A DNA stretch of 64,000 bases, taken from assembly GCF_006345805.1 (NCBI RefSeq), contig NC_043011.1:64368464-64432463 (forward strand), read 5' to 3'. The notes below the pieces were generated by a model that had not been told where the DNA came from, did not search any database, and saw only the letters and a program-made list of their open reading frames with translations. The stretch is from Octopus sinensis (lineage: Eukaryota). Shown in pieces: positions 14,824-51,020 of the stretch (positions are counted from its first letter, which is position 1; each line of letters begins with the position of its first letter). A program made the position numbers and the translations under genes.

Positions 14824-14868
<45 letters not shown>

Positions 14869-14876
<8 letters not shown>

Positions 14877-15177
14877 AAAGGGCTTAGTAAAATAAATTAT
14901 TTTGCCACATACTGAACTCATTAGAAATAGCAGAAAAGTTTTTTTAGCTATTTCTAATACTTAAAGAAAGTTTCTCTCAGATAGTGTTTACTCAGAATAA
15001 CCCACGAAGGGGTTATGTTTTTACCCCCATACCTTCGTGGGTTATTCTGAGTAAACACTATCTGAGAGAAACTTTCTTTAAGTATTAGAAATAGCTAAAA
15101 AAACTTTTTTGGCTGCTATTTCTAATGAGTTCAGTATGTGGCAAAGTAATTTATTTTACTAAGCCCTTTTATATAAT
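14869..15177. repeat. Fold-back hairpin, ~142-bp arms, 21-nt loop
   Basis: Arms align apart from one 4-nt indel and a few mismatches; same family as 27030-27900 and 61361-62245. Confidence 0.9.
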
Positions 15178-15324
15178 GTAATATTTTGAATTCGCCTTAA
15201 ATGGTCCTTTTACATACTGAATACTTGGTGAAATTGATTAATAACTAATTAATTTTACCCTCAATTGTTGAAATTATATATATATACATATATATATGTA
15301 TGAGTAAGTATCTCATTTATTTCT

Positions 15325-15905: not shown

Positions 15906-16156
15906 TGTTACACATTCATATCTATGTGTATACGTGTGTAGAATACATCCCCACTTTTGGCACTATTTGTTAGTGAACAGTACGAACTGTGTTTTAAAGT
16001 AAACAGTATTACTACGCTGTGTCTAACGATATACAGGTGTCGCTGCGCTGAAGGTAGCACAGTTCGTGTAACATGGAAAAGTAAATAAACACGTAAAAGA
16101 ATAACTATGCTTCGTATTGAGTTGTCTATCCCATTAGAACGAAACTACACATAACA
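15906..16156 (+). repeat. 5' LTR (251 bp, TG...CA)
   Basis: Begins TGTTACA, ends ATAACA, contains AATAAA, followed directly by the PBS. Confidence 0.9.
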
Positions 16157-16169
16157 TGGTGGCAGCGGT
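16157..16169 (+). promoter_or_regulatory. Primer-binding site TGGTGGCAGCGGT (probably tRNA-Leu)
   Basis: Directly abuts the LTR; complementary to the 3' end ACCGCUGCCACCA that I recall for metazoan tRNA-Leu. Confidence 0.75.
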
Positions 16170-17006
16170 AAATAATTAATTGTAAATTGTGACTATACAA
16201 CAAAACAGAAACACAACGAACCAGAAATTAACAAACAAAACATAGCTTCGTCTTCGGACACACATACACGAGAATCCAAAATGGTGAGCCCCGTCGCCGT
16301 ACAGATGAATCTACATCCAACCATGAATTGGGACTCCGGTGTTATCGTAGAAGCGTTTTAGAAATTCAAACAGAAATCTCAACTAGTTTTCAAAAGTTTC
16401 CTGAAAGGCACAACTGAAGAAGAAAAAGGTAAGCTATATCCTTTTATGGACGGGAGAGGAGGGCCTAGACCTATTCAATAGCTGGGACATGTAAGAATCG
16501 GATTGCAATAACCCAGACACACTTCTAGAGAAATTTGAGAGGCACCTAGAGCACAGGTCGAACCATAGAATTCACAGATACGAATTCCAGAGCCTGAAAC
16601 AAGACCCACAAGAAACGATTGACAATTTCCTGTCAAGACTAAAGAATGTTGCCGAAAAGTGCAAATTCAAAGATACGGACGAAAGAATTGTTGACCAATT
16701 AAAATGGGGGTGTATTCATAAAGAAGTTCAGAAATCCCTCATAGGTAAAGACGCTCTCCAGTTGATAGAATCAATAGACACTGCAAGAGCATTTGAAGCC
16801 ACTACCAAACAAATGGCCTCACTTACCTTACAAACAAACTCACTAGGCAGCAGTGTAGATATTGTATCTAGGCACAGGACGAAACGCACCTGCAAACAAA
16901 AAACATGCCAGTACTGTGGTACAGCGCATGAATTCCATAACCGGAAGAAATGCCCTGCATTCGGTACACACTATAAAGTATGTGGAAAACTTAACCACTG
17001 GAAAAA

Positions 17007-20000
17007 ATGTGTAGGTTGACAAAATCCCAGAAATACAAGCTCCAATCTTCAAAGAGGAGCGGAAATAGAAGAAGAAATATATATGCACAACAAAAGGAAC
17101 AAAACACTTCAGAGGAGGAATTCGTGGCGGTCGGCACAATAAATGTACATGAGATGGGAAAGGACGACCAGAAAAAAAATGAGGCATACACAACAATAAG
17201 AATTCAAAAGAAGTCTGGCAAGAAAAGAATAAACATTGACTTAAGGCTGAAGATTGACATTGGAGCCGAGAATGATATCTTGCCTGTCAACCTTTACGAA
17301 AAGATGTTCCCAGAACACATGACACAAGAGGATAAAGTCAAAGAAGGAATCCTCACACCAAGTGATGTAATCCTCACTGCGTACGGACGGTACCAGGATT
17401 CCACAACTGGGAGGAACAAAAAACAAAAAAAAACAAAACACACAGGGACACACAAAGGAAAATAATCAAGTGTTCTTCTGTCAACCTTTACGAAAAGATG
17501 TTCCCAGAACACATGACACAAGAGGATAAAGTCAAAGAAGGAATCCTCACACCAAGTGATGTATCCTCACTGCGTACGGAGGTACCAGGATTCCACAACT
17601 GGAAAAACAACAATCAACAGGGACACACAAAGAAAAAATAATCAAGTGTTCTTTTAATGTCACAAGAACAGAGGGACCAGCAATTCTTGGACTCAATACT
17701 GCAAAAAGCTAAATATTGTGTCAATCAATGGTGAAGTGAAGGCAGCTCCAAGCAGGATTGACAGAGATATGCCTATCAAAGACCGACCACCCATCACAAA
17801 CAAAGAACTGATAAGCATGTACCCTGAATGATTTGACGATACAGTGCTTGTGGAATGTCGATACCATATAACAGTCAACCCTAATATCAAACCAATTGTT
17901 CACCCACCTCGCCGCGTCCCTCTAGACTAAAAGAAGAAGGGAGACAGAGTTGGACAGAATGGAAAAAAAAAGAAATAATCGCCAAGTGACACGACCAACA
18001 GACTGGGTAAATTCAATCGTAATCAAGGAAAACCCAATGGTACCCTACGGATATGCCTCGACCCAAGGGACCTGAACAAGGCATTAAAAGAGAGTACCAT
18101 CCATTCCAACCCTTGAAGAAATCACACCATCATTGGCTGGGTCCAAATTATTCAGCAAACTGGATGCCAGTAATGGGTACTGGAATGTAAAGATAGACGA
18201 AGAGTCATCCATGCTCACTACCTTCAACACACCATTTGGCAGATATCGATTCAACCGACTCCCATTTGGATTGAAGGTGAGCCAAGATGTTTTCCAGCGC
18301 CAAATAGATGAGACCTACCAAGGCTGCAAGGGAGCAATTGGAATAGCAGAAGACATCCAAGTGCATGGCAAGGATGAGACCACACATGACTTCAATTTAC
18401 ATGAAGCTATGCAGAAAACCCGACAAGCAGGCATCAAACTCAATGCAAACAAGTGTGTGATAAAAGCAAAGAAGTGCAAATTCTTTGGAATTATATACTC
18501 TGCAGAGGGATTTAAACCAGACCCCGCTAAATTGGAAGCCCTTAGAGACATTAAAGAACCTAAAGACGAGAAGGAACTCAGGAGCTTCCTGGGACTCATC
18601 CACTACATGGGAGCCTTCATACCCAAGCTGGCTGATCACACTGCAAATCTCCGAGAACTAAACAAAGATGACGTAGAGTTTGATTGGTGTGCTTCACGCA
18701 CACAGGATTTCGAAGCGATCAAAAAGCTCATCAGTAAGGAGACAACTCTGCAATAGTATGACAGACGCAAACCAATAATACTCCAAGTCGATGCATCTAT
18801 GAGAGGAGTTGGCGAAGCACTGATACAGGGAGGTAAACCCATTGCATATGCCTCGAAAGCTCTCTCACCCACAGAGACAAGGTACGCAAATATTGAAAGG
18901 GAACTCCTGGCAGTAGTATATGGATGTGAAAAGCTCCATACATACCTGTATGGCAGACATTTCTATATTGAAACAGACCATCGCCCGCTAGAACAAATAC
19001 ATAGAAAAAAACTCACAAAAGCACCAACTAGACTGCAAAGATTACTGTTAAGGCTTCAAATATACGACTACGATATCAGGTACAAGCCAGGAAAAGACCT
19101 GATATTGGCGGATGCTCTTTCCAGACTATCATCACGTGATAAACAGGAGATGGAAAGACTAAGCATAAAGGTCCACCACATTGTAAATGTGACAACCACA
19201 AAGCTAGCAGAAATCAAAGAGGCAACCAGCAGAGATGAAGAACTTCAGCTCCTTACTCAGATGGTGATTCAGGGGTGGCCAGAAAAGAGACATCAGGTGC
19301 AGTCCCTAATTCGTGAATATTGGGCCATCTATGATGATATATCAGTGGAGAATGGAATCCTGATGGCTGGATCCCGAATAATTATACCCAAGTCAATGAG
19401 AAAAGAGATTCTGGACAAGATCCACCCAGGGCATCTAGGAATGGAGAAATGCATGCTTCGAGCCAAGTCAGCAGTATATTGGGTAGGCATGTACAAAGAC
19501 ATAGAGAAGACAGTTTCTACATGCCACATCTGTAAAAAGTACAGAAACTCACAACAAAAAGAGGAAATGATATCTAGTGACATCCCAAGAAGGCCATGGC
19601 AAACTATTGGAGCAGATCTGTTCACAGAGGGCTAAGAATGGTATTTGATTATGGTCTGCTACAACTCAAATTTCCAATTGTGAGAAAAGTGAAGGACCTG
19701 AGAGCCCAAACAATCAATACAGTTGCTCGAGGACTTCTAGCAGACCAAGGAATACCAGAGCAGATCATCTGTGGCAATGGAACCCAGTTCACATCGCAAG
19801 AATTCAAAAAGCTAGCCGATGAGTATGGGTTCAATATTACAACCTCATCTCCACACTACCCGAAAGGTCATGGGTTTATAGAAAGACAGGTGCAGACAGT
19901 GAAGAGAACACTAGTCAAATGCCGAGAGACTAAGGAAGACCCACACCTGGCACTTCTGTCCCTACGAGCAACACCACTGAGAGCTGATATGAAATCCCCA

Positions 20001-20318
20001 GCAGAATTGCTGAATGGCAGGAAGTACAAAACTACCCTGCCAAGTAAGATTCAACCTCCTATTGACCAGGAAGAGACAAGGGCAAAGTCAGCAGCCACTC
20101 AAGAACATTCACAGAAATGTTACAACAAACATGCACAATACTTACCTGAGATACTTGGAGGACAACATGTACATACTCAAGATCCCATAACTAAAACAAG
20201 GATTCCAGCACAGGTTGTCAGTAGAGCTGAAACCCCAAGATCGTATATAATAAAAACGGAATCTGGTAAGCAGCTTAGACGCAACAGGGCCCATATCCGC
20301 CCAACACTAATGGGATAG
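17007..20318 (+). pseudogene. pol: Gypsy pol (PR-RT-RH-IN), broken by stops and frameshifts
   Basis: ORFs 17007-17465, 18133-18756, 18799-19635 and 19596-20318; RT catalytic DD reads ED (IAEDI). Confidence 0.9.
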
Positions 20319-20538
20319 ACAACTCAATAAGAAGCATAGTTATTCTTTTACGTGTTTATTTACTTTTCCATGTTACACGAACTGTGCTACTTTCAGCGCA
20401 GCGACACCTATATATCGTTAGACACAGCGTAGTAATACTGTTTACTTTAAAACACAGTTCGTACTGTTCACTAACAAATAGTGCCAAAAGTGGGGATGTA
20501 CTCTACACACGTATACACATAGATATGAATGTGTAACA
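20307..20538 (-). repeat. Inverted LTR copy (232 bp)
   Basis: Reverse complement of 15906-16137 with 4 substitutions counted; lacks the last 19 bp of the LTR. Confidence 0.95.
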
Positions 20539-20573: not shown

Positions 20574-20622
20574 TAATGAATACCTATTATTCTAGCAACT
20601 ATGATTATTCTAATGGTGGTGA
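20574..20622 (+). CDS. Gene A exon with start codon and putative signal peptide
   Basis: Branch point TACTAAC (20541-20547), acceptor TTTTTCCCCCTTATTTCCAG, overlapping donors GTGAGT (20619) and GTAAGA (20623); ATG at 20601 gives MIILMVV in phase 1. Confidence 0.55.
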
Positions 20623-23600
20623 GTAAGAGAGTAAACCAACGATTAATATTAAACGATGTTTATGATCATGAAATCCGAAAATTGTGATGCCAGAGGTCAA
20701 TGGACTATTTCAGAGTATTCTTGAGATTAATCGACGTACTCATAATAAATTGTCCACGTTATGTCCTAAATGGATAAGGATAATATAGAGCATGTTTGTC
20801 AAGGACTTTAGATCCACATCAAAGCAGCCTTTAGAGCTAAAGGCGGGTGGATAGACTGAGCTGATGAGAAGGTTTATTGTGATCTAGCCCACAGATATTT
20901 ATCAAAATATATTTATTTGTCTTGTAATATTTTATCAGTCCCAATATGTTTGAGGCGTATTCGAACCGGTGAACAAAGTATTTACTGCATTTTTTCACGG
21001 AAGATATATCCCGTTTGTTGACAAATGGCGTGTATACACCTACATTCGCCGGTTCAAATGTGTCTCAAGCATATTCAGGCTGACAATGACGTCACAGGTT
21101 TACCCATTACTGCTTAGCGCTCACCGTCAGGAATCTACTTTTCTATGCATTGCACTTGTTTTATTAAATTACCAAGTATGCCCACAGGTATCTCTTGCGT
21201 TCCGTAGATATGTAAATGTTTTGACCTGTTCATAGTTAGCTGAGCAAGAGTGCATGTTGTGTGTATACTCATATATTTGTTTCGATCAGCACGAATATAT
21301 CAACATGTTTTAATTATTCAGTTTTAATGATATGTTCTGTTTTGATACTGGTAATTATGTAAAAAAAAAAACTCTTAATCATTGGCTGTCTCCTATATTT
21401 ACTTTTAAATCATTCCATCTGATTGAAACCTCAATATGTTAATTACTGTTGTATTTATTACATGAAAATAGGTTCTCGTTTACGAAAAATATGCATTCAT
21501 AACATATTCGACTAATTAAGACAAAGGATTCTGTGACACTGATGTTTGGACTTGACACTGATGTCTGTCGGCAGCTTTCCTCTAAGCAATCAGAATACTC
21601 ATTTAGATAATTAAACCAATAGCAAGCACGCATACAGAATGCTTGTATTTTGATAGTTTGAGGGTATGCTGCTCTTATAGGCATAAGAGAGTATATTCTC
21701 TTAGTGCGATTGGTGTTAAAACACCCGTGAGTCATAGACAAGCGAGATAACTCGCGACAGATCCTATTCAAGAGCGATAGACATCGATGTTTCGTAAATT
21801 TTGTGACTCGATTTTCCATCAGGCGCATGAAGAGGACCTAATCTCTTAAGCATATTTGATATAGTTAAAACTTGTCAAATAAAAAAAGATGTAAATTAAA
21901 CCATAAAATGAAAGATGAACACATGTTAGCATATATAATTAAATATAGCAAATATGTATCTTCACTTATTTAAGGCCAGCACCTGTTACACTATATTACT
22001 TAAGACGAAGTTAGTTGACGGTAAATTTATTTTACTACTTGAACGATTTGTTACGGATAACCAAGATGAAATATTCCATATTCATTTCATTTCTCATTTT
22101 CAGTAAGTTTCGATTACTGCATATAAACGTCTCACCTGTATAGCTAAGTGGAAATCTCTGTTTATTGTTATCTCTTATTCTGATTCTCGTTAGGACGGCA
22201 TTTATGCATGTAAGTGTATACATACACATACAAATAAACACACATCTATTGATGTGAATGTTTCTCTGTGTGTCAATGAATACAAAGGTTACAACACTGA
22301 TGCTTAAAATTTGACCTTTAAAAATACATTATTGCATTCAATTTCCATGCGCAGTGCCTGTTTTCTGTTATGACACAACATCCAGTAATATCTTCTTAAC
22401 GGGTTTGGTGCACAAAAGCCATATGAAAAAACACACACACACATACATACGCGCGCGCGAACAAACAAATGTATATATGCGTGTGTATGTGTGAGCGTTT
22501 GTGTGCCAATGTATATGCGTGTGTTTCTTCCTTTGCATTCTACCTCTTGTCAATCGATATTAGTTTACCTGTACGTAGCTCTCCATTAAAGGATCCAATT
22601 GAATAAATATTTGCCTTAAAATAACACTTAAGGTGCACTAGTATGTCTGTAGGCCAACGACTGAAGAAAGTAATAATAAAACGATAGATGGGTCTTCTTT
22701 ATATCTATGTATAAGCGTGCATATAAAGGGTTCAAACTCTCTTTGTATACTATCTCTCACAACATGCACAAACGCGCTCAACGCTATAAACTTATGTAAA
22801 AACAATGCCATACATGCAGACTTTGCAATATGCGTTTAAATTATATAAATCACTGACTCACATTTATATAAATACAAATACTAAATCTATTTCATTATGC
22901 AAAAACTATCATCGAAAAAGTGAAGTGTACCCAAGCAAAAAATCGGACTATAAAACAGCAATAATGCAAAAAAGCAAAAATGACACCCTAGTACGTAATT
23001 ACTCTCTGGAATTGGCATACTTTGACGAGCTGCTCTATTTTGCTACTAAAATATGCATTAATATTAAGCGTTATTGGTTATAAGAATTAAGGTCTCCACG
23101 CAACATTAATACAATTGAAGATGGGTCATTTAAAATATATCGTTTTTGGATTTGGTTTCGAAGATTCTTTATATAGGTTCGTGTGTTGAAGCATATTCTC
23201 TTGTGTCTAGGGAGAGTCATTTTCTTTTTGTTTTATAATTTGATTTGTATTATAATTTAACACAATCACCGGTAAAATTTCCACTTATTTCTTATTTTTA
23301 TTTTGCTAAAATGTTCGTTGTGTCTTGCAACATTTTCACGCGAGAAGTAGTCAAAACTGCCTTTTGAAGGCAGTTTTCTCTTTTGTTTAAATATACACTA
23401 TTTTATATTTGAGAATATATTGTCTATTGACATTTTATATATGTTGGACCACTGGACATGAATTTTCAAAAAGAAAAAATTCACTACTATATATATATTT
23501 TACGTAAATGTTTTTAGCAATATTTAAAAGATTAGTTCGGCAGTCATTCATTTACTCCCGACTGATACTGCCCTTGCGCGGCGAATTTTTAAAATTATAA

Positions 23601-23973
23601 TGTATAACGAAGAGACACATGTTACTCGACACTTAATTATATGTTAGTTTTATGGCGCGGTCACTGATGAAATATTTCGCCTAGCAAATTATTTTATTTG
23701 CTAAAAAAATTTAGACATCTAGGTCTGACCGGAATAAAGTAACAGGATAAAAGTTATTTTTCATTCCTTTTCAAGATTGGTCTTCAATGTGGGTTCGGTC
23801 GTTTTGACTACTTGTTCTAGCGTGTAAACATTGCTTGCTGAAGGCAGTTTTGTCATATAGTTAAATGTTCACTATAATATATTTGAGAATATGTTGTCCA
23901 CTGCCTTCTTATATATGCTAGACCATTATATATATTTAGCTACCTACATATGTCAATGCATATATATATAATA

Positions 23974-24022
<49 letters not shown>

Positions 24023-24309
24023 TGTTATGAATACATACATAGATACGTACATATATTCATATATGTAGATATGTAAATATGTAAATATGTAAATAGTCCG
24101 TAGACAATAGGTTGTGTTAATATTTCATTGTACGTTTTAGACATCGGGAGGTCAATAATAGATTAGTACAAGTTTGTACAAGTATAGATATCCGCATTAT
24201 TGGTTAATATTTTCACTTTGCCATTGACACGCAAGGCTTATTTTAACCACGTGACAGAAATGTTTGCCTTAGACTAAAAGTACAAGAGTTCTTCGAAAAG
24301 AGATTAGTG

Positions 24310-24520
24310 ACCCTTTTCGGTCATGAATGACTATGGAATTGCACCGAGAAAGTCACCCTCCCAGGCACAAGTCCGGGCAAGCTTGTTTGTGGAAGGCCAG
24401 GAGTCGTCCATGCATGCCAGCCTCACCTCTCCTCACCACTGATGTTATCCATTTAAAGCATAATACAGAAACTTGTTTGAACATGGTTCGGTTAACGTCG
24501 CGCATGTGTGGTAACACACA
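24310..24520 (-). mobile_element. SINE-like repeat (family of 14460-14800)
   Basis: Shared CCTCCCAGGCACAAGTCCGGGCAAG core. Confidence 0.6.
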
Positions 24521-24703
24521 CAATATATAACACATTAAACGAAGGTATTTTAAAATCCAATAATTTTTACATATACACGAATCAGTTCAGGAATACAGTA
24601 AATGTACAGAATTTATTTAGGACAGTATCAACTGCCTCAACATATTTATCTGTAATATTTATTTATTTTACTTATATAAAATATCTTTCGTTTTAATTTA
24701 TAG

Positions 24704-24806
24704 AATTTGTACTAGCAGCAGACCATTGTACAGAAATAGCCAAAGAATCTTGCCACGATGCAATGAAAGCATATCCTCATTTATCAAATAATTCTGACTA
24801 CTGCAG
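24704..24806 (+). CDS. Gene A exon 2 (xFVLAADHCTEIAKESCHDAMKAYPHLSNNSDYC)
   Basis: Acceptor TTTTAATTTATAG, donor CAG|GTACGT, open phase 1 to 2, Cys-rich. Confidence 0.75.
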
Positions 24807-25148
24807 GTACGTTTCATCGATATATACATTACAGTAGCAAATAATGGTCTTATGGCAGAAAATGTATAACACCATATTATGTAATCTATCTCAGCATATT
24901 AGCATTTTAAATTTACATTTTTATTTCCTAACACATTTATAAATTAAAATTGACAAATGCATAACTTGAGCTCCGGTTCTTTTTGTTGATTTCTTTCGCT
25001 ATATTCAAAGAAAATATTTCTATTTTAGTAAGTTTATAAAAAATATACTAATAACAAAGAAGCAAATGTTACATTGACAATATTAATAGAAATGAGAAAT
25101 GAAACGTACCTGCAGTAGTCAGAATTATTTGCTAAATGAGGATATGCT
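24768..25148. repeat. Inverted repeat 24768-24817 / 25099-25148
   Basis: 49/50 identity to the reverse complement; the left arm spans the exon 2 end and its splice donor. Confidence 0.95.
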
Positions 25149-25291
25149 GTTACGTAACACTGAAATGGTTTAACATTACGATTGAGGCAACGAAAATGTC
25201 ATGGCCTGCCACAATATACAAATAATCCAAGATAATGAAACATATAACTACTTCGTTAAAATGACTTTACCCTTTGTATGCTCACTTTCAG

Positions 25292-25380
25292 ACGCTTACG
25301 AATGTTTGAAGCATGTTTTCAAGAAACCCACAGCAACTGCAGCTTTTATTTTGCAATCATCTATCACCATCTGTGCAGTG
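25292..25380 (+). CDS. Gene A exon 3 (RRLRMFEACFQETHSNCSFYFAIIYHHLCS)
   Basis: Acceptor CTCACTTTCAG, donor GTG|GTAAGA, open phase 2 to 1; homologous to 56500-56684. Confidence 0.8.
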
Positions 25381-25997
25381 GTAAGATATAACGATATTGT
25401 TCATATTCGTACATGGCTTAAACAGTACGTTTGGCAGGAAAGAAACGTGCATTTAAGCAGTACAAAAACAGCCAAAAATGGAAAGTGCAGTTATATATAG
25501 TTTGATGGAAGAAAAGCAGAACAAAAACGATGGATGAAAATGGGTTAGCTGGAGGTAAATCTAGATGGAAAAGCATGATGAATTTATGGGAAAGTACCTG
25601 GAACAATAATAAGTTTATCCGATGAAACATGTAGGAAATCAACTTGGGGTAATTTTTTATGAAAAGCAACCACCTAGGAAACTAAGTAACTAATTTTAAG
25701 CCCACTTTACGGGATGTTCAAGGGCATGGAAAAGCTAGTGGGAACAGCTGATGTACTTGCGCATACAAATGCACGTTCCCACAACTTTATCGATCGCATT
25801 CTCACCTGGAATCGACATTTGTAATTGTTTCAAGACGTGTGCACGCCTTGATAACGTTGGTATCTACAAATCAAATTTTTTAACGCAATTGGATGGAGGA
25901 TGCCCGAGATCCTAGAAGGCGCACACGCAGACAAACAGAAAGATCTCATATAATATAAATGTGTATATATATATAATATATATATATATTATATATA

Positions 25998-26040
<43 letters not shown>

Positions 26041-26129
26041 CGTCCTATGGGATGACCTAGATGAGATATATATGTATATTATACACACACACATATGTGT
26101 ATATATATATATAGTTCCTGGATCTTAAG

Positions 26130-26720
26130 AACCTTCCGGTCCAGAGAACACGGTGCCATCATACCCCTTTTCTCCTCCTTTGTACAGCCACACCTTGAAT
26201 ACTGCTACCCACTATGGTCTCCTTATACAAGACAAAACATCTGGATGATTGAATCACCCTAGAGGGCATTCACTAAATGAATTAAAGGTATGACTGCTCT
26301 CGATTAGTGGGACCGACTTAAAGCGTTGAAACTCTGCTGTCTCCAGCATTGCCGCGAGCGGTACATCATTTGTACGATGTTGGGAATATACCGCCAACTT
26401 TGCACAAACCTCCTCAACATTAGTTTCAAGTTTAATCCAAGGCTTGGACCACGGGCCATACGTCCCCTGCCCAATTTAGGATCAGAGCATATAGGTACAT
26501 TGCAACATAATATCCTTTCCTCAACAGGCTCTGCCCTGTTTAAAATTGTCCCGAAAGAGATCAAAGAGGAAAAGTAACCAAACTTTAAACAGAGTCTGGA
26601 TAGATTTCTTCAAGGAACACCGGATAAGACACCCAAAAAGAAGTCACTAGTTGAATGGACCGTAAACAAAACTTGATTTAAGCAAAAACTTAGATGGTGC
26701 TTTTAATTTAGACATGGCCT
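26130..26720 (+). mobile_element. CR1/L2-like LINE 3' fragment
   Basis: Degenerate QPHLEYCYPLWSP and L...RERYII motifs typical of post-RT CR1/L2 sequence. Confidence 0.65.
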
Positions 26721-26723
26721 GGA

Positions 26724-26769
<46 letters not shown>

Positions 26770-26834
26770 TATATATATATCAGAAATATTAATTTTAAAT
26801 CTCTTAGAGATATGTAAGGAGGTGGGGCGATAGA

Positions 26835-26988
26835 ATGGTTGTATACTGTCAATCTAACGTGAACGTGACAGTAGCGGGTTACACCACTGTTTAGCCCTAG
26901 GAAGCATCGTCGATGTTCCTAGGGCTAAACAGCTGTAATGTATCCCCCCATACTGTCACGTTCACGTAGATTGACAGTATACAACCAT
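26835..26988. repeat. Imperfect fold-back hairpin
   Basis: ATGGTTGTATACTGTCAATCT...AGATTGACAGTATACAACCAT plus an inner CTGTTTAGCCCTAGGAA/TTCCTAGGGCTAAACAG stem. Confidence 0.85.
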
Positions 26989-27029
26989 ATATATATATAT
27001 AGATATATATATATAAACAAATAGGGACA

Positions 27030-27899
27030 ATTATTATTATTAATCAATTTACCAAGTGTTCAGTATGCAAAGGGACATCAAGGCATTAAAATTATACATG
27101 TATAAAAGGGCTTGTAAATAATTACTTTGCCGCTACTGAACTCATTGAAATAGCAGACAAAAAATAAAGCTATTTCTAATACTAAAGTGGAAGCAATCTT
27201 CGAAATATGTTCTTATTTCATGTTTCCAAATCCAACCAAGGAACTGAGCGATGATGATAGAAATTGACTAATCTTGAAACGTACGTTCTCGAATACCTTA
27301 GCATTTGACGATGCCTACCCCCAAACTATGAATAACAAACATATATATGAGAGAGATTTCTTTATATTAGAAATAGCTTTAAAAGTTTGGTGGCTGCTAT
27401 AATGCGTTCATATGCGGCAAAGTAATATTTTACTAGCCCTATAATGTATAATGAATCGCCTTCAATGGTCCTTGGATTACTGAACACTTGGTGACAGTGA
27501 TTAATAATTAATTAATTTCTCAATTGTTGAAATTATAATTATCTCCCTCTATTAATGCTTCGGATTTTACCGAAATAAGATAGTGTTGAGGACCCATACG
27601 GTGGAAAAAGAACACTCTTCGCTTGCTTTTTATTTGTGGCACTGTTAGTTGGAAGCAGATCTTCGAACGTATGTTTTATTTCAGGGTTTCCAAATCCAAA
27701 CCAGGAATTCTGAGCCGATGATAGAATGTTGTTTTGATAATCTGAAACGTACGTTCTCGATTAACCTTAGACATGATCGTGTCCTACCCAACTTTGTGAA
27801 TAGCAAACAATATATATTGAGAGAGAGTTTCTTTAAGTATAAGAAATAGCTTTAAAAGTTTATATTTAATATCAGTATGCGGCAAAGTAATACTAAGCC

Positions 27900-27900
<1 letters not shown>
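27030..27900 (+). mobile_element. Non-autonomous Penelope-like tandem and inverted repeat with two hammerhead-like motifs
   Basis: Inverted piece 27030-27185 followed by ~1.6 tandem units; motifs at 27246-27290 and 27712-27758. Confidence 0.6.
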
Positions 27901-27939
<39 letters not shown>

Positions 27940-28179
27940 CTTTCGAAACTCCGATTACTATATGACATCCATTATTATTTTCTCAAATTAAAACAAATAT
28001 ACATACATACGTACATACATACATACATACATAGACGCATACATACACACACACATACACATATATATGTGTGTATGTGTGTTTCGTGATTTATAATGCA
28101 AGAGCAAGAACCTAATTTACATTTATATATTCCCTTAGATTTATAATCATTTCACACCATTTTAATTCTTTCTTTGCAG

Positions 28180-28223
28180 GATCTCATTGGGATGAAAGCA
28201 AAAATCTCAAGGAATACGACTGA
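28180..28223 (+). CDS. Gene A terminal coding exon (GSHWDESKNLKEYD*)
   Basis: Acceptor TTCTTTCTTTGCAG, phase 1 matches exon 3, AATAAA downstream (~28333, ~28492); paralogous exon at 60454. Confidence 0.75.
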
Positions 28224-28734
28224 TATATGTCACAGTACCTTCAGTATATGAGTATGGTTTCAATGAATACCATTAGAGTAATACAGCTAAAATATCACAT
28301 CTCTTTTCGGCTGATACTGCCTATAATATCACAATAAAGCAGAGATGTATCACTTTAATAATACTTGCACTGGCGATTAGAACTTTGCCTTTGTAAAAGA
28401 CTGATGGTAAATATATTTAAAACGAATCCTAATTAACTGAGCAATATCATGGCAGATCTTAATGCAAATTTGTGAAGACGATCCAGTAGGCAATAAAATA
28501 CGAATTCGTTACTAAAACATTCATATGACTATTATTACATTTTATGTGTTTATACATGACGCAAATCACTGCAAAGCACATACACACACACACACACACA
28601 TTTATATTTATATAAGATAAATATAGGCTTTGCATACTGAATATTATCAAAGCAAATTCAACAGTGCCGCCGAATAACAATTAATATACAGAAAAACTAA
28701 ATTACAAATACTTATTTCTTTATTGCCCAAAGGA

Positions 28735-28880
28735 GGTTAATTAAAGGTTGGACAAACAAGAACCCAGAATGGGATTAAATCGACTACATGGACCCCGGTA
28801 ATTATCTGGTACTTCCTTAATCGACCCCGAAATGAAGAAGGGCAAAATCGACTTCGGCGGAATTTGAACTCAGAACGTAA
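28735..28880 (-). mobile_element. tRNA-derived SINE (shared by both duplicate copies)
   Basis: Reverse complement of the 12800 family. Confidence 0.7.
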
Positions 28881-29196
28881 CAACAGACGTAATACCACTA
28901 AGCATAACAAATATTGCGTGAGAGAAAACAGAAACGAGACAGAAGAATTTAGTAGATATATTGCCATTATCACGAATTTTCTAATTATCTACATTAGAGA
29001 TACTTCTTATACGTTAGCTGATATTCTCACATATATGTATAAACGCACAAACACATATATAATGCATGTATATATACTTATATATATATATATATGCATA
29101 TATGTGAGATGTTTTTATGTTTATATCTTATATATGTATATCTAAGTATATATATATGCGTGTATGTATATGTTATATATATATAATATATATATA

Positions 29197-29267
<71 letters not shown>

Positions 29268-30631
29268 TTGTTTGTATGTGAAATTTACAGAAAAACAAAA
29301 GATGAATTAAGTGTAGAAGGAGCGGACAGGTGTATTAGTTCGGGAAGGTGAGAAAGTCGTTTACGGTTCGAGCCTTCGTACTTCGGCATGAAAGAACATG
29401 ACAAATAAACATACAGAGAATTAAAAACAACAAAAAAAAACTTTGGGAGATAGTAGTTAATCAAATACATCCTCATAGACATACGTCTATAACATTATCT
29501 GCCAAAAATTCATGATGCAATTACAATGATTAGAGAAAGTGCAATCTCATACTAATGAAAAATCTTTCAAAATCTGTGAACCGATTGTTAATAACTCCCT
29601 ATGGGATACTTCATATATATTGTTTTATATCCAGTGAGTATTTGGGGGTTAAGTGATTTCATTGGCGGATTTTTAAAAGCACAGATATATTAGGGCTAAT
29701 ACATAATATGGAAGTTGTTTTTTGTAATGATATTAACCCTCCCCTGTTTAGCTTGCTGTTTAAAATTTTTACTATTTTTTTATAAAGTCTTTCTTATATT
29801 TTATGAATGCGGAATATTCTAAATTGTGATTTATTTCAAAATTGACTATTTTAAATTGTGGAATTGTACAGTTTAGATTTAGATTTAGTTGCCTTATGCA
29901 CTGTTCTTCATTTGTTAATCGCAGACGCCTCTCTCATAAAGTATCAATCGGTTGATTTTCATTTTGTAAATTGCAATATTTAATGTTTTTCAGTTATATA
30001 AATATCTGTTCGTTTACAATGCATCTCACTTCTCAGATTTGAAACGTAGATTAATTTATATGATTTGTTAGATTAGTCTCCGTTTCAATAATATATCCAC
30101 ATTGCATTCTGGGCATGTGATGCAATAGATACGAGTTTTTCTTCAGGCAAATAATAGTTGCATACATTTGCAGCGCCTTTCAATCTCTTAATCGTTTGTT
30201 TGAGCTTTGCTCAATCATTTCATTATTTCAACAACGAATACCTCCCGAGTTCGGTAACTAATATTTCTTTCTCCTCCAGCGATACCACATTTACTAGAAG
30301 TGCCCTGAGGCTTGGTGGTTATATTCATCACGTGATGATATGTGGTTTTGTAATTCTATATCAGAGATTTGATGATTCATGCAGAATTGGATTGCATCGT
30401 TTGGTGAAATCAAGATGTGATAACTAAGAATAGTGATGACGAGAAAGGGAATATAAATATGTATATATTCATATATATTAAGAGTATTTGATACAAAGAG
30501 ATAACGTTTCTAACTTCTTGAACATTCCCATAAGATCTTACGTTTCTTCGACTGAAATGCTCGTGATATCCCCATTTATAATAATTATTATCATTCTTCT
30601 TCTTTTCTTCTTCTTCTTCTTATTCTTCTTA

Positions 30632-43030: not shown

Positions 43031-44400
43031 ACTTTAATTAATATATAGTTAGCATGTTCTTTAGACTTAGTATACCTTTATTAAATACCATTAATTGCCA
43101 ATGATCAATCTTTATAGATTCCATCTAATAAGTCAAGATTTAAGCATATAAAATAAATAAATATTAAACTATTTCTACGTAATTGTTTTCCTCAATCTAT
43201 TGTGGTAAATTTTGGTATATACTAAAAAGTATTCAAGCATTTTATCCTTTTATTTATAATATTCTTCTTAAATAATCTTGATAACCCTCAATTTTTTTAA
43301 TTTACACAATATAGCTATATAGTTTTAAAGTATTCAACTATAGTTCCCCATGATAATATTTCCCCTGGTTTTACTACAGTCTCGCTCATTTAATTGATAA
43401 CGAAATATTTTCCTTTACCAAATCTCATTATATTTCTTCAAAGTAATCTTGACTATTGTATGACTATACCCACTATGATTTCTGTCAACTCCCTCAGCCC
43501 CTTTCCTAACAGAAACTGCTCCGTTTTCCTTTGCTTTAGATTTCGATATACAAAGATTTGATATACAAATCTATAAATTAAAACTGACTACAAAAAACAG
43601 TGACAAGATAGATCCCTAACAAGACCTTTTTTTCCTGATAACTTGATAGCTTTTAAGCCGAAGTGAAGACAGAATGATCTTTGTCGCTCTCCTTTCCTTC
43701 TTGGAGGTTTTAGTTAAAGTTATCCTAATGTGTCCATCTGTTTTAATTTAACTTAATTCTATGTACTTTTGCAGCAGAGGATTGCTCTGCATTTAAATGG
43801 ATGTAATGGTTGCATTGTTCACTTAAATGGAGTGGCTTCAATCGATTGTATTGCATTATCACTGGATATCCGGTTGCTTATTTTGATTTCAATAACCTTA
43901 CATTGGAACTCTATGGATAAAACCGTATTAAACTGTAAAAATGTGGCGCAGGTTCCTACCCGACATCCGAATCTCGGAGTTTTATCATGGGTACCGAATA
44001 ATTGATAATTGTCACAAATTACAAACACATATATAAATAGTCTGTGTATTGATATATGTGTGCTGCGAAAGAAAGGCCTTTCATTTAGATTTTAATAGAT
44101 GGATGAAGAGCATTCGATGTTGTCCACTGCCATAAAGTTTCAACGCCAGAGAATACAAAGGCAAAACTAGAATATGTGGATATTTCTATTGAAACATAGT
44201 GCGCAAAAATACCACTTACTAATATTTAATTACAATGTATTTAAGTACCTCTTTCTTTCCCGAAAACACATAGTAAAAAAAAAAATTTTGTTTTTAATAG
44301 ACGAAGGATACATGACACGTCAGGTGAGGTTGTATGTATCTAAAGTGCTTTAAAATTAAAATCTTAACAGTTGCCAATGTGTTTGACACGAATAACAACG

Positions 44401-44440
44401 ATGAAATATGTTCTACTTCTTCTTATGATTCACCTGCAAG
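44401..44440 (+). CDS. Gene B signal-peptide exon (MKYVLLLLMIHLQ)
   Basis: ATG, hydrophobic core, donor AAG|GTAAGT in phase 1, upstream acceptor TTAACAG at 44370; loosely similar to 20574-20622. Confidence 0.55.
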
Positions 44441-44559
44441 GTAAGTAAAATCCATATCATTTCAGTACATCCCGGAACGAGTTAGGCATCCATGATCTCT
44501 CCATACGTATATTTGTATACCCGTCTCTCTCCCTCCTTCTCTCTCCCCCTCTCTCTCTT

Positions 44560-44840
44560 TATGTATATAACACCGTGATCGCCGTGACTGACCAGACTAT
44601 TGGATCCTGTTATACATCGCTGATCACCATGCGCTTCGCATTGTTTAAGCTTTCAATGACGCCATCCCTCTGAGAGAGCGTTGGGGCGAAAGAGTAGAGC
44701 AGGGATCGCCACCTCTCCCTGCCAGAGGGGTTTTAGGTGTTTTCGTTTAATGAACACTTAAAACGCCCGGTCTTCGAATCGTAACCGCGATCCTACAACC
44801 TCGATCCTACAACCGCGATCCTAACTACCGGGCCATTGCC
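44560..44840 (-). mobile_element. SINE with RTE-like 3' tail
   Basis: Tail resembles the RTE tail at 1682-1750 and 59280-59340. Confidence 0.5.
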
Positions 44841-44953
44841 CCTACACACTCACAAATACCTAAAAAATACACGCACACACACACACACATTTATATATAT
44901 ATATATATAAATATAAATATATAGATAGATAGATAGATTTGTATATATATACT

Positions 44954-45023
<70 letters not shown>

Positions 45024-45359
45024 CAGGGAGGATATTTAAACCTCAAAAGTGTATTAATAAGATTCAGTGGTTCAATAATCATATTTTCTACAGATATTTC
45101 TTCAATGAATATATAACACAAAATGTCGAAAACTGTCTAGAAGTACTATCTACTCAAACAGAATATTCTTATGTATAGTGATCGATATCTAATTAATGAA
45201 GATGTTGATTAATTGATAATTTAATCCCTTACAATTGGCTATCTCTGTTTTGTATCTCGATAAGATTGCCGATAACAATAATAATTAAAATAATAATATA
45301 AGGTTTTAGCCACAAATTCCTTAGCAGTACCAGTTGTTCTTTATAGCTTTAATGTGCTT

Positions 45360-45650
45360 AACTGGAATACCAGTTAAATAATGAAAATTAACAGAAAATT
45401 CCGCAAGCTACTGACTTGTAAGAAGATGCACCATCCAAAGGCAGACGTGGATCGCCTTTACCTTCCCAGAGCTCAGTTAGGTCTATGTTCAATCCAGCTT
45501 GAACTTACATACAAAACCACCACAATCGGACTGGCCAAATACCTTCAAACAACCAACGATTGTATTCTAAAACTTGTTGAAAAACACGAAAGACCGAAAA
45601 AACTTCACCCTATTCTCAAGGAGAGAAAAAAACGGCTCATGTACTGAGAA
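45360..45650 (+). mobile_element. Dong/R4-type LINE internal fragment
   Basis: RKLLT..KMHHPKADVDRLYLPR. Confidence 0.75.
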
Positions 45651-45774
45651 GACCACTATCGCTGTGAAAATATCATCCATCCATGAATTTATATATTTAA
45701 TAATTTCGAAAGAAGGAAAAACATAATGATAATAATTAAAAAGTAATAATATTATAGTAAATATAACAATATAT

Positions 45775-46022
45775 ATATTATATAGAGGGCATTATTACAC
45801 ATAAATGCCTCACACTAAGAGGGACATAAGTCATTTCTACCAAAAATGTCACTAATCATACCCAATGCAGTTTTTCAAAGCAAGACATTTAAAAAATGAA
45901 TTTTTTAAATGTCTTGCTTTGAAAAACTGCATTGGGCATGATTAGTGAAATTTTTGGTAGAAATGACTTATGTCCCTCTTAGTGTGAGGCATTTAGGTGT
46001 AATAATGCCCTTTATATAATAT
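45775..46022. repeat. Fold-back hairpin, ~122-bp arms, 4-nt loop
   Basis: About 4 mismatches; loop TGAA at 45897-45900. Confidence 0.95.
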
Positions 46023-46141
46023 AAATTAATATGTTCAAAAGAAAAATATTTTTTCGAATTTTTTCTCTTATGAATTTTTTCACGCTATCTACCTCATAAT
46101 TTCTTGTTAAGATTCCTTATTAAGAAGTTATCCTTAATTGT

Positions 46142-46211
<70 letters not shown>

Positions 46212-46212
<1 letters not shown>

Positions 46213-47876
46213 TGTTGCGGCCAAAATGTTCAGAACGGCATTGTTTTCGTCAGAAAGGTAAGTATAAATTTTGTCAAAGTGGTTTTGAACTTGCATAGAA
46301 AACCACCACAATCAGACTATAGTTTTATATTCTATAATTTTCACAGGCAATAAATACAATATTAATTGTTAGTGTCTGAGATTTGGGTGTAATTTCAGAG
46401 GATAATACAAAAGTTATGGATGATTTAGTGATTTACTGCAAAACACATTACGGCCAAAATGATCAGAACGGTTAAAAAAATAACAAAATAATAAAAAATG
46501 ACAGAGAATACTGAATTTATTTAATATTTAGTGTGAAGCCCTTTAGCTTCAATCACACTCTGACATCTTCGACTGCACGAGAAAATTAAATTTTCAATTT
46601 CTTGCTGGGTGATCTTATCCCATTTTTCCTGAAGGGCATTCCATAATTGCTCATTTGTTTTAGGATTTCTGGCTTTCGAACGTTCTCCTAGAATATTCCA
46701 TACATTTTCAATAGGATTGAGATCTGGGCTTTGAGCAGGCCAATCCATAACCTCTTCAGCCTTGAGGAAGTCCATGACCGCCCTAGCCTTGTGATATGGG
46801 GCATTGTCCTGCATGAATATGGGTGGTCGCTTAGTTGAATTCCTCAGCACAGGCAAGACATGATCTTTTACAAGTTGTTTATAAACTCCTGCATTTAACT
46901 TTCCATGTAATCGCACCAAAGGGCCCACACCATCTCCAGATATCATTCCCCAAACCATGACACTTCCTCCACCGAATTTAACACTAGCCTTAAGGCATTT
47001 AGGCAACAAGTTTTCACCTACTTTTCTACGAACGTACCTTTTCCCATCTGAGCCAAATAACATAAACTTAGATTCATCACTGAAATGCACCGTTTGCCAT
47101 TTTTCTTGAGACCACAACACATGTTCGGTTGCAAAGGTAAGACGACACTTTTTTTATTCTTGGAGTTGATCAGTGGCTTCACTGCATGTGCTCTTGCTGG
47201 TAGGTCATGTTCAACTAAACGATGAGACACAGTTTTTCGAGATAAAGCTTTCTTCAATACAATGCTCATTCTCCGAGAAACAGCAGCTGCAGTTTTAAAT
47301 CTGTCCTTTTTAACCAACTTTACCATAGCACCATCTTCTATCTTGTGTCGTTTTTCTTGGTCTACCTGTAAACGTCTTGCTTCACACGAACCACAATCAT
47401 CGTAGAGCTTAAGAATACCGTGAACAACACTTTTTGACTTGTTAACAATCTTTGCAATAGATCCAATACTTAAATTATCCTTCCTTCAAAGCTTAATAAT
47501 CTGCTGACGAATTGGTAACGGAGTAAGTGGCATTATATTAACAAAGTACACTGCAAATATTCTTACTAATGTTTAGTAAACGAACCGTCACGTAAACAAA
47601 TTCAAAACATTAGAGTTCGCCGATTAAATATACTAACACACGGAGTAAAAGTAACCGTTCTGAAAATTTTGGCCGCCATGGGTTTTGCAGTAAATCACTA
47701 AATCATCTATAAGTTTTGTATTATCCTCTCACATTACACCAAGATCTCAGGCAATAACAAATAATATCGTATTTATTGTCTGTGAAAATTACAGAATATA
47801 AAACAACTTTGATAAAAAAAATATATCTATCTTACTGACGAAAACAATGCCGTTCTGAATATTTTGGCCGCCACTT
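46212..47876 (-). mobile_element. Tc1-family transposon, full length, IR/DR-type long TIRs, TA-flanked
   Basis: TIRs ~265 bp with the GGCCAAAAT..TCAGAACGG motif at outer and inner ends; transposase 46521-47533 with FSDESKF, QDNAPYH, SPDLNPIE; stop and frameshift present. Confidence 0.95.
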
Positions 47877-47950
47877 TATATATATATAGATTTCTTTCCT
47901 TTTCTGAACGTGTACCGATTACTCGCGTTTGTGATTTTTCATGTTTGTTC

Positions 47951-48018
<68 letters not shown>

Positions 48019-48166
48019 TTATATACGTTATTTACATCATTTACATTTGACGGATATTTGTCCTCATCTTGTTTGTTGTTAACACAATCAGGTATCTTGG
48101 TAAAGTGTCGAACCTGGGTTCTCATTCGCAAGATATGTTACGTTGATATTATTATTACTATTCAGG

Positions 48167-48252
48167 TCACTGCCTGGAATCGAACTCCGAATCTTGCGCC
48201 TAAGAGCGCGGGCTCCTAACCCCATGATTCCGAGTTTGATTCCAGGCAGTGA
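48167..48252. repeat. Small hairpin from a SINE head (21-bp arms)
   Basis: TCACTGCCTGGAATCGAACTC...GAGTTTGATTCCAGGCAGTGA. Confidence 0.7.
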
Positions 48253-48266
48253 GAATAATAATAATA

Positions 48267-48346
<80 letters not shown>

Positions 48347-48349
48347 TAC

Positions 48350-49900
48350 CTAGGGGTAATTGAAGGGAACGGAATAAGGCATTCAGAGATGAAGGCATGG
48401 ATCAGGAGAGAATGCTATCGAAGAGTGAGAGCAATACTCAAGACAGAGCTAAATGCAAGAAACAGGATCGAAGCAATCAATGCATTAGCTATACCAGTCG
48501 TGACTTACAGTTTCAATATTGTTAATTGGTCAATTACTGAAATATGTCAGCTCGACAGAAAAATAAGGAAACTGTTGACAATGCATAGAATGCACCACCC
48601 TAAGGCAGATACAGAACGACTCTATCTGCCAAGAAAAGAGGGAGGGCGTGGTCTTTTGCAACTGGCAATAACAATGAAGATTGCTACAATTGGCCTAGAC
48701 ACCTACCTGAAAAGCTCTGAGGACTGGATGTTAAAACTTGTCTCAAAACATGAAAACAAGAAAGCATCATACTCAGTCACAAAACAATATCTAAGTGAAT
48801 TCCGAATACAACCAATTTCGGAATTAGAGATAGATATACAAGAAACAAGCACAGAAAAAGCTAGGCGCATGAAAACCCGTGCCAAAACTGCGGCCTTAGA
48901 TATTCTGAATAATAAATGGCAAGAAAAACCTCTCTATGGCAAATACCCAAAGAGAGCGAATAATGCAGGTATCGACAAAGCCCTGACCCACCAATGGCTA
49001 ATGGCCTCTGGCTTAAAATCTGAAACAGAGGGGTTTATCATAGCAGCTCAAGATCAATGCCTACCAACAAGAAACTACCAGGCCAACATATTAAAGATCA
49101 GAAGCAGTCCAACGTGTCGTGTATGCAAGCAACAAAATGAAACCATTGACCATGTGGTCTCCAAGTGCAGTCTTCTAGCGCCTACAGAGTATCTCAACAA
49201 GAACGATAGAGCTGCACAATATATTCACTGGGTAATCTGTAAAAATCGGATTTGCCCCATGAAAAAAACTGGTGGGAACACAAACCACCCCCAGTGCTTG
49301 AAAATGACCACATCTCACTCCTCTGGAACTTCACCATTCAAACTGACAGGAAGATAGATGCAAATAGGCCAGACATCATATTGAAAGACTTCAAACAAAG
49401 AACATGCCTCCTCATTGATATGACTGTCCCAATCGATATAAACGTATCTGTCAAAACCTACCAAAAACTGAGCAAATATAAAAATCTTGAAATAGAAATC
49501 AGCAAAATGTGGAAGCTGAAGACTAAAACAATACCTGTTGTCATAGGTGCCCTGGGAATGATAGCAAAAGGAGCTGATAGTTACCTAACTCAGATACCAG
49601 GAAACCCAGAAATGGCAGAAGTTCAAAAGATAGTGCTCATGGGAACTGCTCATATCCTACGCAAAATACTCTCTATGTAATCTCAAGGTTTAAAACAAAC
49701 ATAATTTTCGGTCTAAAAAAAAAAAAAAAAAATTTTTTTTTTAGACATTCATTAGTACAACATCCCCACCCCCCAAATATATGGCACACTAGGCATAACA
49801 ACAACATGAACTTCCAACACTGTTGTCTCTTGTGGTCTCTGGGTGAGACTTGGAGCCAACTTGTACAAACATAAAGCAAAAGTCAAACATAAAATAATAA
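48350..49900 (+). mobile_element. Dong/R4-type LINE, 5'-truncated, subfamily 1
   Basis: ORFs 48389-49357 and 49252-49680; (TAA)n on both sides. Confidence 0.92.
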
Positions 49901-50372
49901 TAATAATAATAATAAAAACAACAACATCGAAAACTACATTAGGAATGAGAAAACAAGTGTATATCAGCCGAAATGTTGTGTTAATAATAAACAAGATGCG
50001 GACAAATATCCGTCAAATATAAAAAATGAAATTTATAGAAGTGATACTGAGATATGTGAATAATGAATGACAAAAATGTTTTTCGATTTCAAGGTTATGA
50101 AGCAGCAGAGTACTGCTATGAAGCAGCGATAAAACTTTGTCCTCATTCTATGCAAAATTATCCTATAAGTAGGCCGGATCGTCACTATTGCGAGTAAATA
50201 TGCTTGTTTTCAACGTTTATTTCTAATATTTTTGTCCATAAATTTCTAATGAATGATATTTGAATGTTTCCTATATGTTGTCACATGATGCGTATCTCTT
50301 TATATCATTTATGCATATATATGTGTGTGCGTGTGTGTATGTATGTATACAGAGAGAGATATAGATATATAT

Positions 50373-50700
50373 ACTAGCAGCAAAGCCCGGTTTCTCAGGG
50401 TCTCTTTTTGATGATGTAGCTATGATCGTGTTCGGTTAAGCATAATCTATGACATCTTTACTCAACCCAATCATACTGGTCCCTGTTTTGATTGGAGCCT
50501 CCGAGTGTATGAAAATTTCGTGACTCCCCCAACTTATCAGAAAACTACTTCAGAAGTTGTGAAGTACGAATTTGTACGTGGTCTGTTTCTGAGAGCCATT
50601 CTTTTGGACCTCTGAATAATCATTAAAATATTGATTCAATTATGATCATAGAAAGAAATTATACTTTAATCCCTATTTTTGTATCCGAAAAAACTATTTG
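50373..50700 (+). mobile_element. Possible Helentron/DINE-like non-autonomous element end
   Basis: Starts TACTAG...GCCCGG; similar ends near 56900-56935 (minus) and core tandem repeats at 57740-58060. Confidence 0.3.

Positions 50701-50961: not shown

Positions 50962-51020
<59 letters not shown>

Follow-up and report, generated by a model that had tools for sequence, protein, structure and literature searches.

Anatomy of the locus

Two gene models, here called gene 1 and gene 2, lie on the plus strand of the 64-kb window analysed here (64,000 nucleotides of Octopus sinensis contig NC_043011.1, positions 64,368,464 to 64,432,463; all coordinates below are those of the window). An earlier note on this DNA had proposed gene 1 as a hidden multi-exon gene with a Cys-braced, probably helical and probably secreted product, a proposal that the sequence evidence supports. 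Exons 2-4 of gene 1 and their counterparts in gene 2 are real, far beyond chance. The two genes share the same anatomy, are paralogs and show constraint on their coding sequence, and they are likely to be an unannotated protein-coding pair with a common four-exon plan. Gene 1 is made up as follows (a slash marks an exon border).

22066-28497, plus strand: gene 1, four-exon model of ~6.4 kb
22066-22102, plus strand: revised exon 1, ATG-initiated, 12 codons and 1 base (37 nucleotides), encoding MKYSIFISFLIF; phase 1; donor TCA/gtaagt
24704-24806, plus strand: exon 2, 103 nucleotides, phase 1 in and phase 2 out, encoding KFVLAADHCTEIAKESCHDAMKAYPHLSNNSDYC(R) with Cys1-3; borders tatag/AATTTG...CTGCAG/gtacgt
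25292-25380, plus strand: exon 3, 89 nucleotides, phase 2 in and phase 1 out, encoding (R)RLRMFEACFQETHSNCSFYFAIIYHHLCS(G) with Cys4-6; borders tttcag/ACGCTT...GCAGTG/gtaaga
28180-28223, plus strand: coding part of exon 4, encoding (G)SHWDESKNLKEYD, then stop TGA
28224-28497, plus strand: presumed 3′ untranslated region (UTR), reaching the AATAAA at 28492-28497

The earlier note had described four small exons with good splice signals. Exons 2, 3 and 4 stand at the positions given there and join in phases 2 and 1 as claimed, and the earlier peptide from FVLAADHC onward matches their spliced translation exactly. Its exon 1, at 20601-20622, is not supported and is replaced by 22066-22102. The acceptor of exon 4 is strong, ttctttctttgcag/G (tttgcag/GATCTC...TGA), and is conserved in gene 2. 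Two AATAAA signals follow the stop, at 28333 and 28492, in agreement with the earlier note. The revised product, MKYSIFISFLIFKFVLAADHCTEIAKESCHDAMKAYPHLSNNSDYCRRLRMFEACFQETHSNCSFYFAIIYHHLCSGSHWDESKNLKEYD, keeps the six Cys and the spacing C-x7-C-x16-C-x8-C-x7-C-x11-C that had been read from exons 2-4, and its length rises from about 85 to 90 residues with the new exon 1. In the six-frame translation of the window, the profile match on exon 2 has an E value of 1e-21.

The paralog announced 32 kb away is present. It runs in the same direction as gene 1, its intron phases match and its splice sites are canonical; exon 4 and exon 4′ are 32.3 kb apart.

44401-60765, plus strand: gene 2, four-exon model of ~16 kb
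44401-44440, plus strand: exon 1′, 40 nucleotides, phase 1, encoding MKYVLLLLMIHLQ(G); donor AAG/gtaagt
50094-50193, plus strand: exon 2′, 100 nucleotides, encoding (G)YEAAEYCYEAAIKLCPHSMQNYPISRPDRHYC(D), with the spacing C-x7-C-x16-C as in gene 1; borders caag/GT...GA/gtaaat
56500-56684, plus strand: exon 3′, 185 nucleotides, with 5 Cys and two copies of a 32-residue unit; borders ttttag/TC...TG/gtatga
60454-60464, plus strand: coding part of exon 4′, encoding (G)PH, then stop TAG; acceptor ctgcag/GA
60465-60765, plus strand: presumed 3′ UTR, reaching the AATAAA at 60760-60765

The revised gene 2 product has 111 residues and 8 Cys (MKYVLLLLMIHLQGYEAAEYCYEAAIKLCPHSMQNYPISRPDRHYCDRLKAFEGCYTRRQSACAKEYSLLSRNHILNLIELSAFLVCYETMESACAATIRQIAYKRLCGPH); an in-frame ATG at 44377 would lengthen its leader by 8 residues. 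Exon 3′ exceeds exon 3 by exactly 32 codons, which is the length of the internal tandem repeat unit. The two units, RLKAFEGC-x7-C... and ELSAFLVC-x7-C..., share the pattern F-x2-C-x7-C... and align with each other at z = 5.8. The extra Cys of gene 2 may stem from a 32-codon tandem duplication within exon 3′, or gene 1 may have lost one unit. Gene 2 spans 16 kb against only 6.4 kb for gene 1 because its intron 1 (44441-50093) took up transposons; this intron contains a Tc1/mariner DDE_3 open reading frame (46521-47120, minus strand) and a fragment of a non-LTR (long terminal repeat) element (48389-49680, plus strand).

The first exons were found by scanning both genes for an ATG-started hydrophobic segment that ends in a phase-1 GT donor. 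Both revised leaders start with ATGAAATAT, and the best local alignment of the two 600-bp regions pairs 22047-22074 with 44382-44409 at 23 of 28 bases, with the ATG in register. Exons 1 and 2 add up to 140 nucleotides in gene 1 (37 + 103) and in gene 2 (40 + 100), so the two proteins align there without gaps and Cys1 is residue 21 in both. The homologous start-codon context and the equal summed length tie 22066-22102 to 44401-44440 and suggest that it is the better exon 1. The exon at 20601-20622 (plus strand; MIILMVV; donor TGA/gtaaga) would give a leader of only 12-13 residues from a weaker donor, lies 63 bp downstream of a retroelement end at 20538 and has no counterpart upstream of gene 2. 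Candidates for exon 1′ at 47121-47199 and 47941-48091 were also rejected; neither resembles gene 1, and both lie in or beside a transposon or a microsatellite.

Paralogy and coding constraint

Both copies lie on the plus strand with the same exon order, intron phases of 1/2/1 and GT-AG borders at all six introns, and the framework C-x7-C-x16-C-x8-C-x7-C is conserved between them residue for residue. The spliced products of exons 1-3 align with a Smith-Waterman score of 109, against 28.5 ± 5.5 in 5000 shuffles (z = 14.7), and none of the 5000 shuffles reaches the observed score. With the Cys masked, the similarity of the two products persists at z = 8.4.

The duplication, as judged from sequence comparison, is old. 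The coding exons of the two genes are at 35% identity, and as DNA gene 1 and gene 2 align nowhere in exons 1-3 or in the flanking introns besides the 28 bases at the start codon. Among the identical residues of these exons, 12-13 are written with different codons, including a Ser encoded by AGC in one copy and TCT in the other and four of the six shared Cys. Nei-Gojobori counting gives a synonymous proportion of differences (pS) of 0.79, which is saturated, and a nonsynonymous one (pN) of 0.48 (Fisher p = 1.7e-4), with pN biased downward and the contrast partly inflated by the discovery of exons 2′ and 3′ through amino-acid similarity. Through this saturating divergence all eight exons have stayed open, all 12 splice sites canonical and every scaffold Cys in place, which argues for selection on a protein rather than for decaying DNA.

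The earlier note had placed gene 1 in a tandem array. The second copy is there; profile searches of the six-frame translation of the 64-kb window found no third, the only extra match being a short inverted fragment that is taken up further on with the inverted repeat of exon 2. No transposon-type domain was found on the exons of gene 1 or gene 2. As the window has just these two copies, and neither bears such a domain, the genes are not a repeat family.

The shared 3′ flank

27997-29740, plus strand, against 60270-63010: shared 3′ block of the two genes, 88% identity overall

The divergence of the coding exons contrasts with this block, in which identity increases in the 3′ direction. It is 70% at the end in the intron, 80% in the 44-nucleotide coding part of exon 4 and 91% in the 3′ UTR, and stands at 98% from ~28396 on for more than 1.3 kb. 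Upstream of the block, gene 1 and gene 2 are unalignable. An identity gradient beside unalignable upstream sequence suggests gene conversion; the 3′ flank of the old duplication was probably homogenised by a later conversion event, and the edge of the block resembles a tract boundary. In gene 2 the block is interrupted at ~61366-62247 by a repeat that is also found at 26986-27937 and 14842-15298.

Predicted proteins

Exon 1 and the start of exon 2 are predicted to encode a short hydrophobic leader (MKY...), most likely a signal peptide, most of which in gene 1 is encoded by exon 1. Judged by eye, the gene 1 leader divides into MK, YSIFISFLIFKFVL and V-L-A/A, which fits the scheme of n-, h- and c-regions with small residues at -3 and -1 except for a Lys that breaks the h-region, and cleavage would be likely after V-L-A, just before ADHC. 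The gene 2 leader divides into MK, YVLLLLMI and HLQG/Y, with Leu at position -3. The revised leader of gene 1 appears to be a more convincing signal peptide than the version that began with the earlier exon 1.

The predicted domain after the leader has 60-95 residues with evenly spaced Cys. In gene 1, exons 2 and 3 would encode a compact, mostly helical domain braced by three disulfides; in gene 2, the domain would have four disulfides through the 32-codon tandem duplication in exon 3′. AlphaFold2, run on the contiguous exon 3′ fragment alone, predicts two long helices with modest confidence, at a pLDDT of 68. Exon 4 is expected to contribute the 3′ UTR and, before it, a short tail that is charged and under no constraint. 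Retention of the Cys, the hydrophobic and aromatic scaffold, the frames and the splice sites after duplication would reflect selection on the protein. Secretion, fold, disulfides and any ligand of the two products are features that we infer. Their likeliest role is in binding or signalling outside the cell, as members of a family restricted to the lineage. The sequence favours none of the roles proposed in the earlier note (pheromone, toxin, salivary, antimicrobial or skin protein) over the others, and the one link to a known family, a weak one, leads instead to the three-helix N-terminal domain of RGM.

Searches with either spliced product returned two matches that were set aside: a match of gene 2 to TPR (E = 0.04-0.06) is a 17-residue match of composition, and a match of gene 1 to Lufaxin (E = 0.4) contains no stretch that is significant alone. 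No Rfam family matched in a search of the whole window.

Observations against a functional pair

Several observations weigh against a functional protein-coding pair, beyond the bias in pN described above. Both leaders are short, and the c-region of gene 2 is non-canonical. In the coding part of exon 4, seven of nine differences are nonsynonymous, and the tail thus shows no constraint. The TAG of gene 2 (60462-60464) stands at the position of a Trp codon (TGG) in gene 1, and past it the old frame is open up to the ancestral TGA at 60495-60497 (DENNNLQKYD). No homologue of either spliced product was found in a word-indexed search of 5.8 billion clusters, a collection that includes eukaryotic NCBI and UniRef proteins (a search with RGMB retrieved such entries). 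An exhaustive HMMER search, made with the exon 3 profile only against 1.84 billion representative proteins, returned a sole match, P0001, in which an integrase is joined to a tandem repeat that contains no Cys; this match is spurious. The same outcome, with a homologue in neither of two very large protein collections, agrees with the earlier view of a lineage-specific family.

A further point concerns exon 2 of gene 1, which carries one arm of an inverted repeat.

24768-24817, plus strand: left arm, the last 39 nucleotides of exon 2 and the first 11 of intron 2, including the donor
25099-25148, plus strand: right arm, within intron 2 of gene 1

The arms are complementary at 49 of 50 positions (98%), with 281 nucleotides between them, and the predicted fold of the pre-mRNA is a near-perfect 50-bp duplex that buries the intron 2 donor (z = -6.8). 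The repeat is young and occurs only in gene 1. It was rejected as a miniature inverted-repeat transposable element, as it lacks a target-site duplication and occurs nowhere else in the window. Template switching could have left it as a scar, either neutral or harmful; the duplex could also act as a brake on intron 2 splicing, or as a double-stranded RNA substrate for RNA editing or small-RNA production. A separate palindrome of ~154 bp lies in intron 3 of gene 1 (26835-26988), flanked by (TA)n, with arms at 86% identity to their own reverse complement.

The likeliest of the alternatives, though unlikely in itself, is that one or both copies are now pseudogenes, intact-looking relics of a once-functional family. 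In its favour are the TAG that replaces a Trp codon in exon 4′, the young inverted copy that would sequester the intron 2 donor of gene 1, the retroelement that ends ~1.5 kb upstream of the start of gene 1, the lack of any annotated or predicted protein matching either copy in the collections searched, and the transposon insertions with which both loci are riddled. Against it stand the open exons, the canonical splice sites and the complete set of scaffold Cys, all kept at saturated synonymous divergence, and the cost of the TAG, which drops only an 11-residue tail that is itself unconstrained. The reading of the two genes as a protein-coding pair is preferred here.

Relation to the RGM N-terminal domain

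The best Pfam match of gene 1 is RGM_N (PF06535), with 16.9 bits and E = 0.0078. Gene 2 matches the same profile positions with 10.7 bits and E = 0.67. Both matches cover only positions 22-47 of 70, and both scores fall under the Pfam gathering cut-off of 24.2 bits. Single-sequence searches of the PDB with either protein return N-domain chains of RGMB and RGMC (E = 0.16-1.9), and a search with the two-paralog profile returns RGM chains only (E = 0.06-0.5). Alignment with hhalign against 12 vertebrate RGMB N-domains is local (28 columns) and gives a probability of 72.8%, P = 3.2e-5 and a score of 28.3; 300 column-shuffled controls score 9.9 ± 1.9 and never above 20.3, and reversing the alignment gives 11.2. 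The similarity to helix 2 of RGM_N is weak and local, but non-random beyond composition.

The common stretch in helix 2 is DSEFCKALRAYAGCTQRTSKAC against NSDYCRRLRMFEACFQETHSNC, and the RGM_N-type motif C-x2-L-[RK]-x-[FY]-x2-C-x7-C is present there; in gene 1 it is located in exon 3. Known RGM_N domains (RGMA, RGMB and RGMC/hemojuvelin; PDB 4UHZ, 4BQ6, 7NDG) are, like the predicted products, small, extracellular, helical and six-Cys. The likeness extends to an identical spacing of C3-x8-C4-x7-C5, to the helix 2 motif [DN]-S-[DE]-[FY]-C-x2-L-[RK]-x-[FY]-x2-C-x3-[TR]-x3-C and to a domain placed straight after a signal peptide, here a predicted one, that has an exon of its own. There are also differences. 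C1 and C2 are separated by x7 here and by x4 in RGM_N, and the loop that leads to C3 has 6 residues fewer here. Helix 3 of gene 1 is about half as long, and in gene 2 helix 3 is followed by an extra C-x7-C-x12-C unit. Unlike RGMs, both products lack an RG[DN] loop, an RGM_C/von Willebrand-D-like domain, a GDPH cleavage site and a glycosylphosphatidylinositol (GPI) signal. A phase-2 intron splits the domain here and is absent from spotted gar RGMB (L001), in which residues 39-210, the whole N-domain, are encoded in one exon, leaving no common intron. Descent of the two genes from RGM_N is a tentative lead, quite possible but with the balance of probability against it; binding of BMP by their products is much less likely.

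The part of RGMs that binds BMP/GDF is RGM_N, which folds as a bundle of three helices with three disulfides (PMC7354924). The R100-G101 'RGD/RGN' loop of RGMB is described as essential for ligand binding, and the ligand contacts R100, G101, L103 and H106 lie in the helix 2-3 linker and helix 3 (PMC7354924). In gene 1 these four positions are S, F (where 2 residues are inserted), I and H, and gene 2 reads A-K-E-Y-S-L-L there, with neither RG nor His. Neither gene retains the set of contact residues.

That the two genes are stand-alone RGM_N descendants whose products bind BMP/GDF-type ligands as soluble modulators or decoys is distinctly improbable, though it draws on several of these comparisons. 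RGM_N is the only known family matched by either paralog or by their profile, and the match survives the shuffling controls; the module it points to is the ligand-binding bundle described above, with the same C3-C4-C5 spacing; and in the alignment Y105 and H106 of RGMB stand opposite the Y-H of gene 1, and L103 opposite Ile. The idea is countered by scores that stay below the cut-off over ~28 columns of helix 2 only, by the C1-C2 spacing and the half-length helix 3 of gene 1, by the loss of the R100-G101 loop in both genes and also of the Y-H pair in gene 2, and by the lack of RGM_C, the GDPH site, the GPI signal and any intron in common with gar RGMB.

An extended version adds RNA editing: a secreted stand-alone RGM_N offshoot would modulate BMP/GDF-type signalling, with adenosine-to-inosine (A-to-I) hyper-editing of the gene 1 duplex recoding the helix 1-2 loop and editing of the gene 2 TAG to Trp as possible extras. 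We give this combination little credence. An A-to-I change at the middle base of the TAG would restore Trp, which is pure speculation. Editing ideas of this kind require a host with heavy RNA editing, as in coleoid cephalopods.

Outside the RGM family, mollusc pheromones such as attractin, salivary or venom peptides and antimicrobial peptides resemble the two genes in having a leader exon followed by a short domain with a Cys scaffold. Like other lineage-restricted secreted disulfide-rich proteins, the pair consists of tandem paralogs that diverged fast except in their Cys framework and that have no relatives outside the lineage. None of the attractin-type, salivary/venom or antimicrobial families is known to have a Cys framework that fits C-x7-C-x16-C-x8-C-x7-C-x11-C.

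Gene boundaries and the origin of the exons

Exons 2 and 3 could be internal to a larger gene, with exon 4 not the last; the product would then be, for example, a complete RGM or a matrix protein of several domains. The evidence for the exon 4 tail as coding sequence is weak, and introns in this genome are long enough for distant exons to escape detection. Such a gene is nonetheless very improbable, given that directly upstream, in both copies, lies an ATG exon that is homologous between them and encodes a hydrophobic leader. The strong acceptor of exon 4 is also conserved in both; a stop comes 3-14 codons into the exon, and a conserved AATAAA follows. A tblastn search with four full-length vertebrate RGMB proteins, a weak test, found no RGM_C-like coding sequence in the window at E ≤ 10 besides low-complexity noise.

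Least probable of all, and already very unlikely, is that no gene exists here and that the exons are open frames arisen by chance or pieces of a repeat or a transposon: open frames of 30-35 codons are common in DNA of ~33% GC, the window is mostly transposons and microsatellites, and the exon 4 region sits in a duplicated 1.7-kb block, but the similarity stands at z = 14.7, in collinear blocks that run in one direction, keep their phases and each have canonical sites at their borders. The window has two copies only, and among the 1.84 billion representatives searched with the exon 3 profile there is no homologue, whereas for a protein from a transposon homologues would be expected there.

Transposable elements around the genes

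The genome is of animal type. The window is AT-rich, with ~30-37% GC where there are no transposons, and microsatellites abound in it. Upstream of gene 1 lies a Ty3/Gypsy-type retroelement (15906-20538), with reverse transcriptase, RNase H and integrase open reading frames at 17007-20318, those with RVT_1, RT_RNaseH, Integrase_H2C2 and rve matches at 18133-20318; its end is ~1.5 kb from the start of gene 1. The 232-bp ends of the element (15906-16137 and 20307-20538) are 98% identical and inverted rather than direct. The element is young, and inverted ends are unusual for an LTR element. Exact look-ups of three transposon open reading frames of the window gave no match, and neither did exact-pattern scans of metagenome contigs for the terminal repeat of the retroelement and for the conserved 3′ UTR block of the two genes. 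Fragments of non-LTR reverse transcriptases are scattered in the window; by eye, a decayed one occupies 33.6-38.6 kb on the minus strand.

Significance

The locus shows a pair of old paralogs whose 3′ flank has probably been homogenised while their coding exons diverged to 35% identity. Short multi-exon genes amid transposons are routinely overlooked by annotation pipelines, and lineage-specific genes of this sort are common in invertebrate genomes. Gene 1 and gene 2 appear to be of this ordinary kind, previously unannotated, with the weak local match to RGM_N as their nearest known relative; they are of modest interest as long as neither expression data nor a link to RGM supplies a role. Descent from RGM_N, if true, would make them a free-standing version of a BMP/GDF-binding module, which is the more interesting outcome. 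If expressed, the two genes would add to the genome a family of small secreted proteins, rich in disulfides and restricted to the lineage, that annotation has missed, and the tissue of expression would decide between a pheromone-like, a defensive and a developmental role.

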